Shown here piece by piece: positions 2,558 to 62,673 of a stretch of DNA of 64,000 nucleotides. Position 1 is the first letter of the stretch. The number at the start of each line of letters is the position of its first letter. The notes beneath the pieces were generated by a model. It saw nothing but the letters and a program-made list of their open reading frames with translations. It was not told the DNA's origin and made no database searches. Source of the DNA: Podarcis vaucheri. Lineage: Eukaryota. The position numbers and the translations under genes were made by a program. Location of the stretch: NCBI GenBank assembly GCA_965113315.1, contig OZ220364.1. One strand, written 5' to 3'.

Positions 2558-3460
2558 CAGTGGTACCTCAGGAGCAAACTGCAGAAGATCCAAGTTTATT
2601 GCGCAACAGGTTCAAGGCGAGATTGAACCCCGAAGAAGGGGTGACAAGAACTTTTAAAGTTCCCTCCGTGTCCCAGAGTACAGTGCATGAAACGTCATGA
2701 ATACATTATGGGAAGGTTGGGTTTCACCAGTTACATCATGAATATAATTTACACGTCATGAATACATTATGAAAAGGTGGAGTTACATTAATTAACATTT
2801 CGGATGAGGGAGGGGGAACATGCGGAGTGAGAAATATACATAGATACACATGTATTGAGTACCGGTGGTGGCAAGACAATGGGTCAGAAATATGCATCGT
2901 CTGCCACCTAATATTGCCTAGAGGAAGGCTTGGCAAAACGATCTGGGTGGATTAAGAAGTTCCTGCGTACGTGACCTGCCGCTTTGGGGATTATGGAAGT
3001 AGGGACAGCATCATGGAGTCCAAGGGGAACTGAGTTGAATGGCACCAAGAACGAGCAGATCAGAACCACGGTTGATTTTATATCAATTTTTGAAGATTTC
3101 AGTGATTTCTAAGCCACTCTGTACTATAGAGCAAAAGCAGAAACAGAGTGGATACATTGTAACAGGATTTTGACAGTATTACTTGAGAGATTATGGAGGA
3201 CAGGGGAGGGGTGATGGAGTCCTAGAGAAATTGAGCAAATATATTGTAGTGAAGAAGACATTGCCCCCCCCCCGTTCCGTATCAACCTGAAACTGTTCTT
3301 AACCTGAAGCACCACTTTAGCTAATGGGGCCTCCTGCTGCCGCCGCGCCGCCGGAGCATGATTTCTGTTCTCATCCTGAAGCAAAGTTCTTAACCTGAAG
3401 CACTATTTCTGGATTATCGGAGTCTGTAACCTGAAGCGTATGTAACCTGAGGTACCACTG
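2558..3460. mobile_element. Tc1/mariner MITE (cagtggtacctc family) with an internal insert of about 700 bp
   Basis: TIR cagtggtacctcagg / cctgaggtaccactg with TA flanks. Family body resumes near 3275; 2573-3270 is foreign. Confidence 0.85.
2573..3260 (-). mobile_element. LTR-like segment (possible truncated solo LTR)
   Basis: Minus-strand order: TG at 3260, 19-bp direct repeats containing TGACGT (2753-2771 and 2692-2710), TATA-like TTTAAAA (2652-2658), AATAAA (2595-2600). CpG-richer than its flanks. Confidence 0.45.
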
Positions 3461-51809: not shown

Positions 51810-53138
51810 TGACATAAGGCGGCATCAAAAGGATAGAACAGATTAAATAGAACTACAGTACTAATTATCCTAAGCCCTCTACATGTTCTTGCATTCTCCC
51901 AATCAACTCTTCCGCTGTCTTATACCAATTGTTACATCCCACAGCAGCAGGAAAAACATTTACGTTCATACTAAGTCCCAAGGAACAATTTTGGGATTTT
52001 AATTATTTTATTTTATATTTACCAGGGAATGGGAAATAGCCAGCAAATTATTTGATCTAGCTTCCTCTTCAACAAGGAGATGTTTCCTAGGAAGTAAACA
52101 ATGCCACCCTCTTCTTGCTGCTCATCAGTTAACTAGGCACAAGATTAGAGTAGCAGTGAGTTCTACAGAAAAAAAATCTCTGTTTAAACCTGCCATGCAC
52201 CACTCTACAGGAGCTTACATGCAAACTGACAAATCCAGCAAAGCCTGGATTGTGGGAAGCTGGGTGTATTGGGGTGGAGAGCATTTCCTACGAATAAAGT
52301 TTTGACCCAAGGAACAAAATGGGAAGTTGCTGTATCCTGTGGAAAAGAGCAAGAGGAAATCTGCAAGGGTGGAACCAACAAAGGGGAAGATGGCTCTAGA
52401 TAGGATGGGAAGGGCAGCTCCTGCTCCCCCAACACACACAAGGTAAACAAGTCAAATTTGGGACACAGGCATCCTGTTTACAACACAAAGAGCCATCTCT
52501 AGGACTCAATCCTATTATACAATTTAGAGTATACAATTTTTTAAGTGAAGGTACTAATGATGTGCAAATGCCATAAATCACAGCTGGGATACTGTAACTG
52601 AAGCAATCCAGAATTAACTACCTCAGAGTTGCTTAACAATCATTATATTATATATAAACATGAGCCAACACTGTCTAATGGGCAGTGTTACCTCAGACCT
52701 AGCGTGCTCAGGCACAGATACCAAGAACAGACCATGTCCTGTGAGACAACTTCCAAATCAGATTCCTTCCATTTTGACTATTTGACACTTCAGTTAGTCT
52801 AAAATGCAGCTGCCAGACTTCTAAGTGGGACTGACTCAGAGGAACCCAGCTTGAAACTGCTATACTAAAGGCAGATTCATTTCCAAGCACAATTCAAAAT
52901 GCAAGTTCTGCTTACTTTTAAAGCACTATGGTTTGTGACCTGTGGGCACCTTAAGTACCACTTTATATTAAAATGTGCCCATGCACTGAAGTCTTTGCCA
53001 CAGAATATTATAAGGTTGATGATAACCAAAGAGAAGGTATTCTCAGCTATTGCACCATTATCTTTGGAAGCTGTCCCACATGTTCTTGTGGGAATAAATT
53101 AAGTAAGGATTATAAAATTTAAAAGCACCAAAGATATA

Positions 53139-54089
53139 CCGTATTTTGCGCCCCATAAGACGCTCCGGCCTATAAGACGCACCTAGTTTTTTTGGGGGGA
53201 AATAAAGAAAATTTTTTTTATTCCCCCCCCAGGTGCGGGGCTGGAAGAAAAAGGTCGGGGAACAGTGGGAAGGCACGCTCTGCCTCCCCGCTGTCCCCCG
53301 AGCTTGTGGGGCTGGCGATGGAGAGAAGTGCACCAGTCCCGGGACGGCAGGCAGCTCTGTGCCGCCATCCCGAGCGGGGCGGGACTTAGCGCCCCGCTCG
53401 GGATGGGGCGTAGACCTGCCTGCCGTCCCGGGACGGCAGGCAGCTCTGTGCCGCCATCCCGAGCGGGGCGGGACCTAGCGCCCCGCTCGGGATGGGGCGT
53501 AGACCTGCCTGCAGTCCCGGGACGGCAGGCAGCTCTGTGCCGCCATCCCGAGCGGGGCGGGACTTAGCGCCCAGCTCGGGATGGCGGTGCAGAGCTGCGC
53601 TGGTCCCAGGACCGCAGGCAGCTCTGCGCGGCCACCGGGAGCAGGGCGGAGCTTCGCCCCCGGCTCCCGGTGGCCGGGCAGAGCTGCGCTGGTCGCAGGA
53701 CCGCAGGCAGCTCTGCGCGGCCACCGGGAGCGGGGCGGAGCTTCGCCCCCGGCTCCCGGTGGCCGGGCAGAGCTGCGCTGGTCCCAGGACCGCAGGCAGC
53801 TCTGCGCGGCCACCGGGAGTGGGGCGGAGCTTTGCCCCCGGCTCCCGGTGGCCGCGCAGAGCTGCGCTGGTCCCGGGATTGCAGGCAGCTCTGCGCAACC
53901 CTTGGAGCCGGTCTCCCGAGGGTTGCGCAGAGCTTCCTGAAGCCTGGAGAGCGAGAGGGGTCGGTACGCACCGACCCCCCTCGCTCTCCAGACTTCAGCG
54001 AAAGCCTGCATTCGCCCCATAAGACGCAGGCACATTTCCCCTTCATTTTTGGAGGGGAAAAAGTGCGTCTTATGGGGCGAAAAATACGG
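53139..54089. mobile_element. Non-autonomous Tc1/mariner (pogo/Tigger-like) DNA transposon with an internal GC-rich hairpin array
   Basis: 25-bp TIRs ccgtatttt(g/t)cgccccataagacgc with 1 mismatch and TA on both flanks. Extra internal copies of ataagacgca near 53172 and 54019. Confidence 0.9.
53336..53940. repeat. 89-bp tandem repeat, 6 full units plus 1 shortened unit, each an internal inverted repeat
   Basis: Unit starts (gtcccggga / gtcccagga / gtcgcagga) at 53336, 53425, 53514, 53603, 53692, 53781 and 53870, an exact 89-bp period. Confidence 0.95.
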
Positions 54090-57000
54090 TAATAGGATGA
54101 TCCTATCACAAGGAAATTGGGCCCTTTGTATAGCCTAACTGCAATTGTATTTTCAAAAACATATGCTCTTGCTGCAGTAAGTCTCTCTGACAACCGAGTG
54201 GTGAGCAATGCTGAAATTAAAGTCATAATTTAAAATTAATTTCAAGTCTGTAGCCGTCAACGGTACTTGTGAGCCTACTGACAATGCAATTTTTTTAATC
54301 CTAGAAGCCCCAGAAGTCAATTGTCTAGAATTTTTCTGGAACTAATTATTAACTTTTATGAATATAAAAGATATATAAGTATTGAGAGTTCTCCTGCTGC
54401 ACTCTGCTTGGTATTATGACTCATTAGATAAGATTTGCTACCACCTGCATACTTCCGCTTAAGATTAGACCCTTTCCAAAACACATGATTTAGAAAGACA
54501 CTAATTCATGGACTTGATTGTGCCATATGTTAAAGCAGCTGAATAGCTTACTTTATGCTATCATCATTATCAGTTCTGACCTCAGGAGTGCTCTCATATG
54601 AGTAAAGAAGAAACCACAACCTCAGAAGTACTTAACAGAACATAAACCCCCAGTGTGAGTGATGCAGGACTGCTAGGTTGTGGCATTCTTTGCTGAAACG
54701 GGGCACAGTATGAAGACGAAATGCGCCCTGCAAAGACTGAACCCCCCCCCCCCAGTACCTACTCACTAACACTAGAAACGTTCGCTCAGGATAGCTGCTG
54801 TATTCCAGTCCAATATGGACTCTTAGCTGCATTGCTGTGGCCAGGGTTGTTTTGTTTTTGCTGTGCTTTTCTTAGAGCAGTTTTGTGGCATATGTGGCTT
54901 TTATGTAAAGAAAAACCAACAACGAAGATGGCCTGTGCACTCAGTGACTCAGTCCACATGTGAACAGGAAAGGAAGGGAGCTGGAGAGAGGAAGAGACAA
55001 AACCTCAAGTAAAAGAAAAAAAAAGGGGGGGGGACTTGCATTGGTCAAAGGATTTAAGGTTTAGAACTAAAGGATGACTGCTATTCTCAACACTTCTCTA
55101 GTGTCCTCAGGGTTCAACAGATTTTCATAAAAAGTGCCAGCAACATAAAATCCATGCCAATTCCAGGGTTCTGCCCCTGTTGATACCACAGTGTTGAGCA
55201 AAGAATCATGGGGCTTAATTACTACTAAAATAAGCAGCATAAGAAGACGCCTGTTGGGTCATACCAAATGTCTATCTAGAAGACTAAAGAACATTTCCAG
55301 TTGTGCATTCATCCCCTGTCAAGCTGCACTTTTGGGGCTCACTGCAGGGTTTCTAAACTCATCTTGTCTATCCTGTGGAGGTCAGAAAGATACATATATT
55401 CCCCCTGGACCTGAGTGGAAACTCACCAGTGGAACTTTACAATACTGTACCAAACTTCACACCAAGGCTATGGAAGGGTAAAGGGCCTTCAGTCCCCATT
55501 AGACCTTGCAAACCACATCATGCTTAACACATATTAATGGGTTTGTAGTTGCTAATTTCACATCACAGGTCTGAGGGGTTGTTAGATCAGTATCTTGGAT
55601 CATCTGCCAACTCCCACATGCCTTTCCATTCCTCCCTCCTACCATTCCCTTCACATGATGCAGACTAACTGTATTTCAACCCTGCTTTATCATACTTAAT
55701 CAGAGGTGACTAACATTTCCTAATCAACAATGTACCCCAAGATGCCTACAGCTTCTACTTTGTCTTCATCATCTGTTGGTCATGCTCATGAAAACCTCAA
55801 GAAGAGCTTATTTAACTGTTGATCTCACTGACTCATTTCTCACCATCCAAGTAACTCAAGAAAACGCCACTCAGACCTAAGACAGAATGAAAACAGCACC
55901 TCATCTACAAAAGAACACTTTATATTTGGGCTCTACACCCCTCTATGTAAGGCTCTGAGTAGTTGTCACCCTGCAGACAACAGGCCCAGACTCTTTGGAT
56001 GCAACTTGCACCTAGGTGTCCACCCCCACACCTGCTTTGAATCCTCAGGCAGGCTCAGCTGCTCCTGGTTACACAATAATAACTAGGCTGCCTTTTTTCT
56101 TGGCATACTGGAAACGAGCATCTGGTAGCATGAAGGCAAGGCTAGAAAGAGAAAATGCTTTGAAGGAACTGATTTTTCTGCAGCACCCCTCCTCCATAGT
56201 AATAAAAGAGATCCACTCTTAATATGGTGCCAGTCTGCATCTTCATAGTGCTAATGTCTTTAAGGGAAATTTAACAAGAACACTCACTTCTTTGTTAGGC
56301 AGTCATATGTATACTTCATCCTATCAGAGACTTGTCTAAAGGCTAAGTGCATTTCAACATCACAAAATTGCTTTTATCTTTTTATAAAAAGCAAGATATC
56401 AGGCTACTAAAATTAGCTTTAAGGAATTAAGAACTGGTTTTTCTGGTTCTGGGATCTCTCTTATTTAGATCTCTGGACAATGCTCTTTGCCAGATGAAAC
56501 AAGCAGGTTCCCATTTCAGATATTGTCCCAAACAACTTATTGGCATGGATTTGATAAATAAGCTACATTTCAGTTCCCCAGCATGCACTGCCAGTAACAA
56601 GGTCAAGGTTTTTTTGACTGATTCCTTGCTTAAGCTGGGATGCTCAGTCTAAAATGTGTGAGACACCACATATTTTGATCCAAACACTCAAGAGAATAAG
56701 AAAGCAGCTCTAAAAGCAGTTCCCTGATAACTAGACCAAAGCTAGAGGAATCATTTTTGTTACTCTCATTTGGTGGCAGCACATAAAGGATATTGTCATC
56801 ACAAGCAAAACTCATCATACTTTAACCCACATGAGTGAAAAGTTTATAACCAGTTGGCTATGTTGGTCTTTGCACCGATACACACACTAGGGCTTGGCCC
56901 ATGTAAAATTAAAATGGATGATAGTTATTTCCGCTGTCTTGTCATCGCATTGTAGCACCATGTGGTAATCTCATCTTGTCCCCAAGTGACCATTCATTCA

Positions 57001-57949
57001 TTATTCTCAAATGAAGCTTGTTAAACTGCCATGACGCCGGATGTAGACCCCTTTTAAGACATAATCCCACACCTGTCATTACTATTAGTCCTCCTCCCAA
57101 AAGGACTCTTTTCCCATGATATCTGGGGCAACCACATGAAAGAGAAGAACAATTTTGCTAGCATGGAATGGCAAAAAACCCAAGCTCACCCCTTTTCAAT
57201 TTGTTGTCATACACATGCTAATATGGTGGAAAATACAAGTAGTCAGAAAAAGAGAGAAACAATACACTCATCCAGGAAGGACAAACTGCATAGTACCATC
57301 AAAGGCAGTGCCAACCTACACCTCTGTGTATTCATGTTGCTCTCATCTCATACTGTACTAAAGAGATCCAGTGCCCTCTCAATGAAGCTCTGCCTACATC
57401 AACACTCTACATAAGCACTTTCTCCTTTCCTTGCTCAAAAGTAAGTTTGTGCTCAGGTTTGGAGCCCCACCCTACAAATAACACAATTGTGCTCCCTGCT
57501 GTTCACCGCAATCCCTGGACCCATAAACCAGCTACCTACCCAAATGCTACTGCATGCAACCTAAATGTCCCCCTCTCCCCCAACTGTCCTGTACTCTCGA
57601 CTATGTCTTTGGCTCCTAAACAGTGAACAGACATAACTGGTTCCGTTTTCGAGCTAACTTCAGGGAGACAGAAAAATGAAGGGATTTCTCCTGCTCGGTT
57701 CCTCCCAACCCTCCAGCCTGCTCTCCAGGGAAGTTCCAAACAGGAACTCATTCTCACTGTTATTAACCGCTGCTGGTTTCGCGTTTGACCAAAGGTACCT
57801 TTCACCCGCTTTCGGTTTATGGAAAACCTTATGCTTTTGGGGGGGGGGGGGCGAGACAGAGACAGAAGTGGGCTGGTCGGAAATGCTATGCCTTTCTTCC
57901 TTCCTCTCCCCCCGCCAACCCCTATGGATTTGGGAGCTTGGGAAGGAGA

Positions 57950-58920
57950 TCCTAACACCGCGTGGGATTCCATCCCGTCCACACAGCGAGATGTAAGCTG
58001 GGATATAGCGCGGCGCATTTTTGCATTAGAGCCGCCTGGAGACTGACGGGGGGGGGGGGCTTGCCTCACCTTCTTCTCCTTGTGGGGCTTTCGGATGAAG
58101 GAGGTTCGGGCTGTGAAGTACTGCTCTAGCTCGGAGTCCGAGTCCTCTTGGCTGCAGTAGCCGCTGCTGGTGGTGCTGCTCCAGGTCATCTCGAAGGACG
58201 GGGTGGTGGCCGCCGCGTCACCCTCGCCCATGCCCAGCTTAGGCTTCTCCTCCACTTCCTCTCGCTCCCTTTGCTTCTTCACGAGAAGACCCGAAGATCC
58301 CCGCCCCGCCGCCGCCACACACCAGCGGACCAAACAAACCCAAGCCGTCTGCGTGCCCAGAAACCCGGCAGAGCTGGGGAGGAGCAGCGCGGCTTCTCTC
58401 CGTAGAAACTGCCTCCCGACGGGAGGAGGGAACGATAATAAACGCCTCAACAGCGCCTAGAAGGGGCAGCCCGCGTCCGTTGGTCGCCTGCGAACCCCTC
58501 TTTCAAGCACTGAAGCCACGCCGGCCGAGAGCCGCCTTATGGAAGTTCCCCGCCTTCTGCCGGGCGAGGGCTGCTCGAGTGGCAACAGACTCCCGAGCTC
58601 CCTTTGGAGGCGGAGACGCCTCCTCTCCCTCCCTCTCCTGGCAGCCGTTGGGATTGAAACGTATACAGCCCCCGCACGCGCGCGCCTCATTGGACGGAGG
58701 GAGGGGACGCTGACGTGGGAGAAGCCCCCCTTCCCATCGCGGGCGAAAAGCTCGGCCCCGCCCTTTCCCTCTTCTGCGGGAGCGGCCCGTGCAGTGATTT
58801 CATCCCCAAGCCAGCCACGCGGGAAGTGGAGTCACGCTTACTGGCTTTCCTCTCCCCGCTCGGCGCGCCTTTCAAGTCCTCCCGGAATAGCAACACCCTA
58901 GAGCCGCCCTCAACTTAACC
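57950..58920 (-). promoter_or_regulatory. CpG island / RASSF1C promoter
   Basis: Dense CpG and high GC around exon 2-gamma. CCAAT on the minus strand (attgg 58689-58693), CRE half-site TGACGT near 58711, GC box ccccgccc near 58756, and a CG-repeat tract near 58675-58685. Confidence 0.85.
58070..58231 (-). CDS. RASSF1: RASSF1 exon 2-gamma, first coding exon of RASSF1C (join 58231-58070, 47207-47103, 46499-46202, 45426-45311, 43853-43707 = 275 aa)
   Basis: MGEGDAAATTPSFEMTWSSTTSSGYCSQEDSDSELEQYFTARTSFIRKPHKEKK matches the RASSF1C N-terminus, including the SSGYCS motif. Kozak ggcATGG, donor AAG|gtgag, 162 nt, inside a CpG island. Confidence 0.96.
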
Positions 58921-62079: not shown

Positions 62080-62673
62080 TAGGGTTGCCATATTCCAAAG
62101 ACCAAAAATCCGGATGCCCCACCACATTCGGAGGACCCCACCACCACCCCGCATCTCCATCGCTCAACCCCCTCCCCGCCGCTGACCCCTTCTTTGCTCC
62201 CCTGCTCGCCCCCTCATTCCATCCCCTCTTGTACCTTCGCTGTCTTTGGCCTCCTGCTCTCTTTTCACCTGGGCACTCCTCCTGGAAAGCCAGGCCAGCC
62301 TTCCCCAGGCTGCAGTTGGCCTTTGCCACCTCTGGAAAAGCAGTACAGGCCGGCCTTCCACAGGCTGTGGCTGGCCTCCACTGCCTCTGGAGAAGTGGTG
62401 CAGGCCAGGTGCTTCAGTGGCCGCGGGGCCTGCAGGGGCTCCAGCCTGGAGGCCACTAAGGAGAGTCGTAAACATGGCCGCCAGAAGTAACAGCGCCATG
62501 GCTACCCCTTCCTTTCGTGACAGCACAGCTGCTCAGCCAGTGCCCTCAGCGCACCAAAAACAAAAAACACAACTCCAGACTTTTTTTAAAAAATTAAAAA
62601 ATCATCCTGGACAGTGATCTCACCCTTGAAATTCCAGGCATGTCTTGGAAATTCCGGACGTATGGCAACCCTA
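62080..62673. mobile_element. hAT (Blackjack-like) non-autonomous element
   Basis: TIR tagggttgccata / tatggcaacccta; degenerate 8-bp TSD atgtatga / gtatatga; subterminal tccgga motifs; internal duplication of about 55 bp near 62291-62400. Confidence 0.75.

Follow-up and report, generated by a model that had tools for sequence, protein, structure and literature searches.

Background

Vertebrate MITEs of the Tc1/mariner type, such as zebrafish Angel and human MADE1, feature a TA target duplication, short terminal inverted repeats (TIRs) and a hairpin-prone interior, and are present at very high copy number. The lizard element described here shares all these properties; an interior tandem array, such as the one it carries, is unusual for these MITEs, and its TIR matched no named family.

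Tandem arrays are found in another group of elements, the tandem-repeat MITEs, which include DTC84 from Donax trunculus, pearl/CvA from oysters and DINE-1, SGM, mini-me and PERI from Drosophila (PMC3879986). The lizard element is like them in being small, non-coding and present in many copies, with terminal or subterminal inverted repeats and a central array of up to about six repeats, variable in number; both also have unit variants in a definite order and a palindrome where the units join. In the described elements, such junction palindromes have been proposed as hotspots for changes in array length (PMC3879986). The two differ at their ends: the described elements generate an AA target duplication, contain a microsatellite module and are now in many cases considered Helitron-like, while the lizard element features a TA duplication and 25-nt TIRs. 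They also differ in the unit: the full 89 bp are palindromic in the lizard array, and not only a 12-nt motif, with two dyad centres and with unit types which differ on both arms. The host, finally, is an amniote.

Foldback (FB-type) transposons are likewise extremely palindromic and built of repeats. In FB elements, however, tandem repeats make up long terminal inverted repeats and have opposite orientations at the two ends. The lizard element is not of this type, since its units (7 out of 7) all point in one direction, with unique sequence on either side, and its TIRs measure 25 nt.

A second line of work concerns the way in which palindromes are perfected. Template switching is documented to yield perfect stems and multi-base compensatory changes in a single event (PMC8794818), and in yeast it has been reported to make the two arms of short inverted repeats alike (PMC8604942). 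The lizard array resembles what is described for template switching and quasi-palindrome correction (Ripley model; Monttinen & Loytynoja 2022, PMC8794818; PMC8604942): stems are swapped by clustered, multi-base Watson-Crick changes, imperfect palindromes are perfected and arms are homogenised. In those papers the events were inferred on phylogenies of RNA or coding genes, while here paralogous units of one transposon array are compared.

An earlier note on this DNA, made from the sequence alone, had regarded an array of this kind within a mariner-type MITE as undescribed. The claim is overstated, since both tandem-array MITEs with junction palindromes (PMC3879986) and one-step compensation by template switching (PMC8794818) are known. 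What is new here is a young insertion, the abundance of its family, a variable interior, a unit with dyad symmetry and at least three two-arm events; no new kind of system is revealed.

Structure of the element

The window (the whole stretch of DNA analysed, 64,000 nucleotides long and without any N) contains, at 53139-54089, a non-coding element of 951 bp, with a G+C content of 69%, within surroundings at 41-42%. Its TIRs match at 24 of 25 positions and, when the flanking TA is included, form 27-nt arms, 96% complementary, as the earlier note had recognized in describing 25-bp TIRs with TA flanks. Four occurrences of CGCCCCATAAGACGC, the inner TIR 15-mer, were counted in the 64-kb window, against a chance expectation of 0.02. 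All four are inside the element: one in each TIR, one as a 13/15 direct repeat at 53166-53180, and one at 54013-54027. The features of the element are listed below, with the strand where one applies and the evidence in brackets; P1 and P2 are the dyad centres described with the array.

53137-53138: left copy of the TA target-site duplication (empty-site contigs, where 53136 is joined to 54090 and 953 nt are absent)
53139-53163, plus strand: left TIR, 25 nt (24/25 complementary to 54065-54089)
53166-53180, plus strand: subterminal direct repeat of the TIR 15-mer, 13/15; candidate second transposase-binding site, a putative role (repeat search)
53194-53230: left subterminal hairpin, G6...C8, with an AT loop (sequence and MFE fold)
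53251-53305: left flanking hairpin (MFE fold)
53336-53602: units 1-3, type A, with P2 stem CCATCCCGAGCGGGGCG / CGCCCCGCTCGGGATGG; unit 3 passes into a type-B tail from about 53585 (TRF, unit alignment, symmetry scan)
53603-53869: units 4-6, type B, with 29-nt arms (93%), for example 53618-53646 with 53659-53687 (inverted-repeat list, alignment)
53870-53937: unit 7 (type C), which is shortened and pairs 53887-53902 with 53919-53934 in its stem (sequence, alignment, pair counts)
53937-53998: right flanking hairpin, with 29-nt arms, 93% complementary, and a 4-nt loop (inverted-repeat list, fold)
54013-54079: right-end hairpin, where the TIR 15-mer copy at 54013-54027 pairs with the inner part of the TIR at 54065-54079 (repeats, fold)
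54065-54089, minus strand: right TIR, 25 nt, the deepest family region in reads (complement of the left TIR)
54090-54091: right copy of the TA target-site duplication (empty-site contigs)

The hairpins reported in the earlier note on both sides of the array were located at about 53251-53305 (53256-53298 in the note) and at 53937-53998. Its description of the whole interior as a hairpin array is too strong: family sequence outside the array accounts for about 200 bp to its left and about 190 bp to its right. The left flanking hairpin, together with positions 53306-53335, looks like a degenerate "unit 0": the 53306-53335 tail is homologous to the tails of the units, as shown by the joints found in other copies of the family, which run from 53317-53334 into later units.

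Within the 64-kb window no further copy of the element was detected, either by the TIR 15-mer, allowing up to 2 mismatches, or by blastn with a word size of 9. Two other features of the window may be mentioned. A 55-bp tandem duplication (2.1 copies, 76% matches) is located at 62291-62408, in a region of 51% G+C. A CpG-island-like region, with 63% G+C, is found at 57830-58900 and contains, on the minus strand, an ORF piece (58070-58231) ending at a site similar to a GT splice donor. No Pfam family was found for the corresponding 54-aa piece. The ORF piece may be a first exon, in which case the MITE would lie about 4 kb downstream in the sense of the gene, probably in intron 1.

Insertion site and age

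The site was found empty in two related lizards. Contigs from organism A (1,615 nt) and organism H (4,899 nt) extend over the two flanks, with 53136 immediately followed by 54090; what they lack is exactly 953 nt (53137-54089), corresponding to the 951-bp element plus 2, and a single TA is kept. These joints establish both the exact TA target duplication and the absence of the insertion in the two relatives, and bear out the earlier description of the element as a TA-flanked transposon. The same count rules out a 3-bp duplication, as expected for PIF/Harbinger-like elements. Flanks diverge by about 1-2% in organism A and by about 3.5% in organism H. The filled site is represented in organism B, whose contigs show both junctions, with 0-1 differences; it presumably represents the source species, or else one very close to it.

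The insertion is young and lineage-specific. Observed CpG is 0.81 of the expected value within the element and 0.14-0.21 of it in the flanking DNA, which fits with a young copy.

The left flank shows two further peculiarities. In organisms A and H 16 extra bases (GAATGTTATCCCCAGA) follow position 53066, about 70 bp to the left of the insertion site; the difference is a small deletion in the lineage of the window. In each of the three DNA runs the segment 52772-52969 has a depth of 2-6 times the single-copy value, and small indels occur at 52902-52908; this suggests a low-copy repeat or a microsatellite adjoining the element.

Classification

The element is a non-autonomous, TA-targeting, cut-and-paste MITE which contains tandem repeats and belongs to a very abundant wall-lizard family. 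It has TIRs and a target duplication with a corresponding empty site, is 951 bp long and non-coding, and occurs at high copy number; its central array is head-to-tail, with a unit number which varies among copies. Its placement in the Tc1/mariner (ITm) superfamily is a tentative one, based solely on the TA duplication and TIRs.

Long ORFs are found in all frames on both strands, and result from the high G+C content. When the translated ORFs of the array were compared by words with 5.8 billion proteins, 6,165 word candidates were obtained, none of them significant, and Pfam had no family for the long ORFs. No Rfam family reached its gathering score: the best match scored 45 bits, against thresholds of 74-142, and matches were to unrelated miRNA models, on both strands. 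The TIR pattern was found in 0 bacterial or archaeal genomes and in 0 viral contigs. In the literature searched, no specific description of a Podarcis MITE or DNA transposon was found, and the TIR strings matched only unrelated primers.

A similar terminus was observed, among metagenomes, in one contig only, Ga0209629_10056137 (L001, JGI), where positions 2950-3111 match the right end of the element at 32 of 33 terminal positions and continue into a similar T/C-rich subterminal sequence. Only one terminus is present, with no second end within 3.8 kb, and the contig is AT-rich, unlike lizard DNA. The same termini may thus occur in a distant animal, either by horizontal transfer or as parts of a widespread family. 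The same contig contains, at 1645-2575, an internally deleted mariner with a weak HTH_48 match, a C-terminal ...YSPDLAPDDFHLF... motif and its own ends of GGTGTGTCCGGAAAGT type. This remnant, 600 bp away from the MITE terminus and unrelated to it, was rejected as a partner of the MITE, since its TIRs are different.

The array of palindromic units

Tandem repeat analysis by TRF delimits the array at 53336-53896, with a period of 89, 6.3 copies, 91% matches and 0% indels; accordingly, the sequence GCAGGCAGCTCTG occurs 7 times (0.12 expected) at a spacing of exactly 89 nt. The six units and shortened seventh of the earlier note are therefore confirmed, and so are the stems that it had assigned to them. 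In units 1-2 (type A) a perfect 17-nt stem pairs 53365-53381 with 53390-53406, around an 8-nt loop. The different stem of units 4-6 (type B) is contained within the 29-nt arms, 93% complementary, listed above. Unit 3 is the chimera that had been reported: in the unit alignment it follows type A as far as unit position 71 or so, and type B from there on. Unit 7 (type C) forms a third stem, perfect over 16 nt (53887-53902 / 53919-53934), before continuing into unrelated sequence. Units 1/2 and units 4/5/6 make up two near-identical blocks.

The hairpin stems of types A, B and C lie in one pairing register. They have in common an apical GGGGCG/CGCCCC stem and a basal scaffold, and their differences are confined to the tract in the middle. 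Pairing is not limited to single units: the 3' arm of a unit is complementary both to its own 5' arm, around a centre in the middle of the unit (P2), and to the one in the following unit, around a centre (P1) which coincides with the unit junction, CCCGGG or CCCAGG. In each register 28-32 of 40 positions are complementary, type B showing about 30/40 in both; at junctions between type A units, P1 becomes a perfect 28-nt palindrome centred on CCCGGG. The array can be described as effectively X X' X X', that is, as alternating half-units of about 44.5 nt with two dyad centres.

The earlier note had proposed that a scaffold remains fixed while both arms change together. The second part holds, as the arms do differ in a coordinated way between types. 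The "constant scaffold" (GCAGCTCTGCGC...) is not separate from them: since the 3' arm pairs in both P1 and P2, it is the basal, outer part of the same palindromes.

The predicted fold of the whole element as single-stranded DNA has an energy of -451.6 kcal/mol, where dinucleotide shuffles give -234 +/- 4.9 (z = -44).

Coordinated changes of the two arms

Pairs were counted over the 7 aligned units, in the pairing register i + j = 101. Standard pairs are found in 92.8% of the cells, a share which falls to 38-50% if the partner is shifted by 1-3 columns. For 6 of the 31 pairs both sides are altered (15 cells, a value reached by 0 of 500 shuffles), where the 7 units, being of 3 types, are non-independent.

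At least three compensated two-arm events separate the types, each of them a short, clustered tract. Columns unique to type A are 35-36 / 65-66; columns unique to type B are 33 / 68; type C is distinguished by columns 28, 29 and 32, with their partners, and columns 28 / 73 exist in three states. Characters are distributed as a mosaic, column 33/68 uniting A with C and columns 35-36 uniting B with C. All these changes cluster in columns 28-36, paired with 65-73, and lead from one Watson-Crick pairing to a different one. Because only three unit types are present among the seven units, the number of independent events is small, three or four at most. The difference between types A and B was also considered as an in-place inversion of the 6-mer TCCCGA; this was dropped, being indistinguishable from a double change of CC to GG.

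An alignment of half-units, with the 3' arms reverse-complemented, shows that inner stems are alike in the two arms of a type and unlike between types. In type A, moreover, the B-type 3' tail is replaced by the complement of the 5' scaffold, with the perfect 28-nt P1 palindrome as a result. Judging from these alignments, the arms of each type evolve in concert. Recent differences within types, either among units 1/2/3 or among units 4/5/6, behave otherwise: all are limited to a single arm and none is compensated. Mismatches within stems comprise 9 G:T cells (about 6 events) and 1 A:C cell, a slight, non-significant lean towards the plus strand; several of the G:T mismatches are explained by CpG deamination, that is, by C-to-T changes at CpG sites.

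Abundance and variability of the family

In public read contigs, every run contributes over 20,000 pieces which match the element with a likeness of at least 80%. Depth, summed over contigs, amounts to 10^5-10^6 at the termini and to 48-92 in the flanks; termini reach 10^3-10^5 times the single-copy depth, a value which is not to be read as a copy number. Depth is lower in the array (10^2-10^5) than at the termini; the value at 53879/53903, within the type-C hairpin, exceeds that of unit 6 roughly tenfold. All unit types are present in independent runs of several species.

The unit number is not constant. Joints from other copies connect 53317-53334 to 53596, 53765 or 53863, skipping 267 (3x89), 445 (5x89) or 534 (6x89) nt; other joints lead to 53935, 53983 or 54002 and skip the whole array (617, 661 or 680 nt), all of these being observed on contigs and not on full copies. 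The interior is therefore variable, and not a fixed family sequence: a single interior shared by all copies, which the earlier note had named as a finding that would speak against its reading, is not what is observed. Copies reduced to a core of about 330 bp, in which the array is missing, appear on semi-quantitative grounds to be the commonest form of the family.

At 53870, 53879 and 53903, among the variants listed, about 88-97% of the family depth carries A, C and C instead of the bases of this copy. At 53903 the C of the majority lengthens the type-C stem, which is shortened by the T of this copy; this T looks like a product of CpG-to-TpG decay. In one run, guessed to be RNA, short contigs match the termini and parts of the array, with no strand information.

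Alternative origins of the array

Each stem type may have arisen as an independent fold-back of a different arm, possibly in different subfamilies, the array being a recombinant of subfamily modules assembled by unequal exchange, with no correction from arm to arm. This mosaic origin is unlikely, though it has several observations on its side: unit 3 is a clean A/B chimera, two homogeneous blocks are followed by a type-C end, the read depths of the unit types are very different, which suggests separate subfamilies, and an inverted duplication provides complementarity for free. Three separate fold-backs are disfavoured by the register, apical stem and scaffold common to all types, which point to one ancestral hairpin, later modified, and by the characters shared crosswise among A, B and C (columns 33/68 and 35-36). 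Mechanistically, moreover, the proposal is near to the main explanation, a fold-back being itself a template switch.

The hairpins could alternatively be kept by selection on a folded strand. This might be an RNA, such as a polycistronic hairpin RNA or a miRNA- or siRNA-like precursor, or a single-stranded DNA that would aid replication, excision or amplification. MITE-derived miRNA hairpins are an established phenomenon, which counts in favour of the RNA version. The three stems in one register, with 92.8% pairing and six doubly changed pairs, speak in favour of such selection; the folds of single units are very stable (-47 to -76 kcal/mol); the excess of G:T over A:C mismatches on the plus strand would be a weak, non-significant sign of tolerance at the RNA level; and the run guessed to be RNA does contain contigs on parts of the array. 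The two strands, however, fold about equally, the array as RNA reaching -575 kcal/mol on the plus strand and -549 on the minus strand, and Rfam matches are sub-threshold on both. P1 and P2, although mutually exclusive, are both near-perfect: a symmetry of the DNA predicts this, while a RNA hairpin does not need it. Recent changes are uncompensated. The RNA nature of the run is a guess, its contigs carry no strand, and the family sits in many introns. Most copies, finally, appear to lack the array, which is then not needed for mobility. Selection on the fold is thus rated as improbable. The view of the earlier note, that structure rather than sequence is maintained, is not supported in the sense of selection, given the equal strands, the sub-threshold Rfam scores, the clustering of changes in tracts and the single-arm nature of the recent ones.

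A more specific proposal, slightly less probable still, is that the array is a selected module: either a cluster of hairpins yielding small RNAs, or a set of DNA hairpins which stall replication and so promote duplication of the element and growth of the array. If this were true, stem sequences would be free to change while the fold and the 89-nt phasing are kept.

A mis-assembly of the array, of its length or of its unit order, from palindromic, GC-rich reads is very improbable: although no independent contig spans the array, short-read contigs breaking in the TIRs and having a length of only about 100-160 nt inside the array, and although some contigs contain strand-switch joints at palindromes, both junctions with the unique flanks are confirmed in organism B, all unit types recur in independent runs of several species, and the exact 89-nt period, the blocks and the A-B-C order are typical of real arrays. 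The number of units at this locus is that of the assembly, no contig from an independent run extending through the array.

Proposed mechanism

The preferred explanation, to which a probability of about 0.6 is assigned, is that of a MITE whose array was amplified by slippage or exchange, and whose palindrome arms were homogenised at the DNA level. Most members of the family would be without an array, and one subfamily would contain a single GC-rich hairpin module, similar to type C. In a smaller subfamily this module would have been amplified head-to-tail into the 89-bp array, whole units being gained or lost by replication slippage or unequal exchange. Growth and contraction by whole units are shown by the exact period, by the homogeneous blocks and by the differences of 3x, 5x and 6x 89 nt among copies.

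A change arising in one arm would then be copied into its inverted partner by intra-strand template switching (quasi-palindrome correction) or, as an alternative route, by gene conversion within a hairpin or a cruciform; unit duplication would subsequently multiply the corrected unit. Since in a X X' X X' array inverted partners are found on both sides of every arm, such copying from arm to arm should be frequent. The order of the types would be from C to B and A. Selection on a RNA fold would not be required for the arms to change in concert.

Intra-strand template switching, which the earlier note had offered as an alternative to selection, is the reading that best fits the clustered Watson-Crick tracts and the lack of strand preference. 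Such an origin is deduced from the pattern of changes in the one full copy read, rather than from a tree reconstruction, and selection acting on source copies could also have contributed to the near-perfect palindromes of the three types.

Significance

The absence of the insertion in two related lizards documents recent cut-and-paste activity of a very abundant amniote MITE family. The array provides a natural record of palindrome perfection, in which several unit types, differing by two-arm changes, adjoin one another within one young copy. Thousands of copies in the genome could make the family a useful vertebrate system for telling "compensation" produced by template switching from true structural selection. 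The case is also a caveat for claims of functional RNA structure which are based on covariation within repeats. Finally, the element represents a seed from which a satellite DNA with dyad symmetry could arise.
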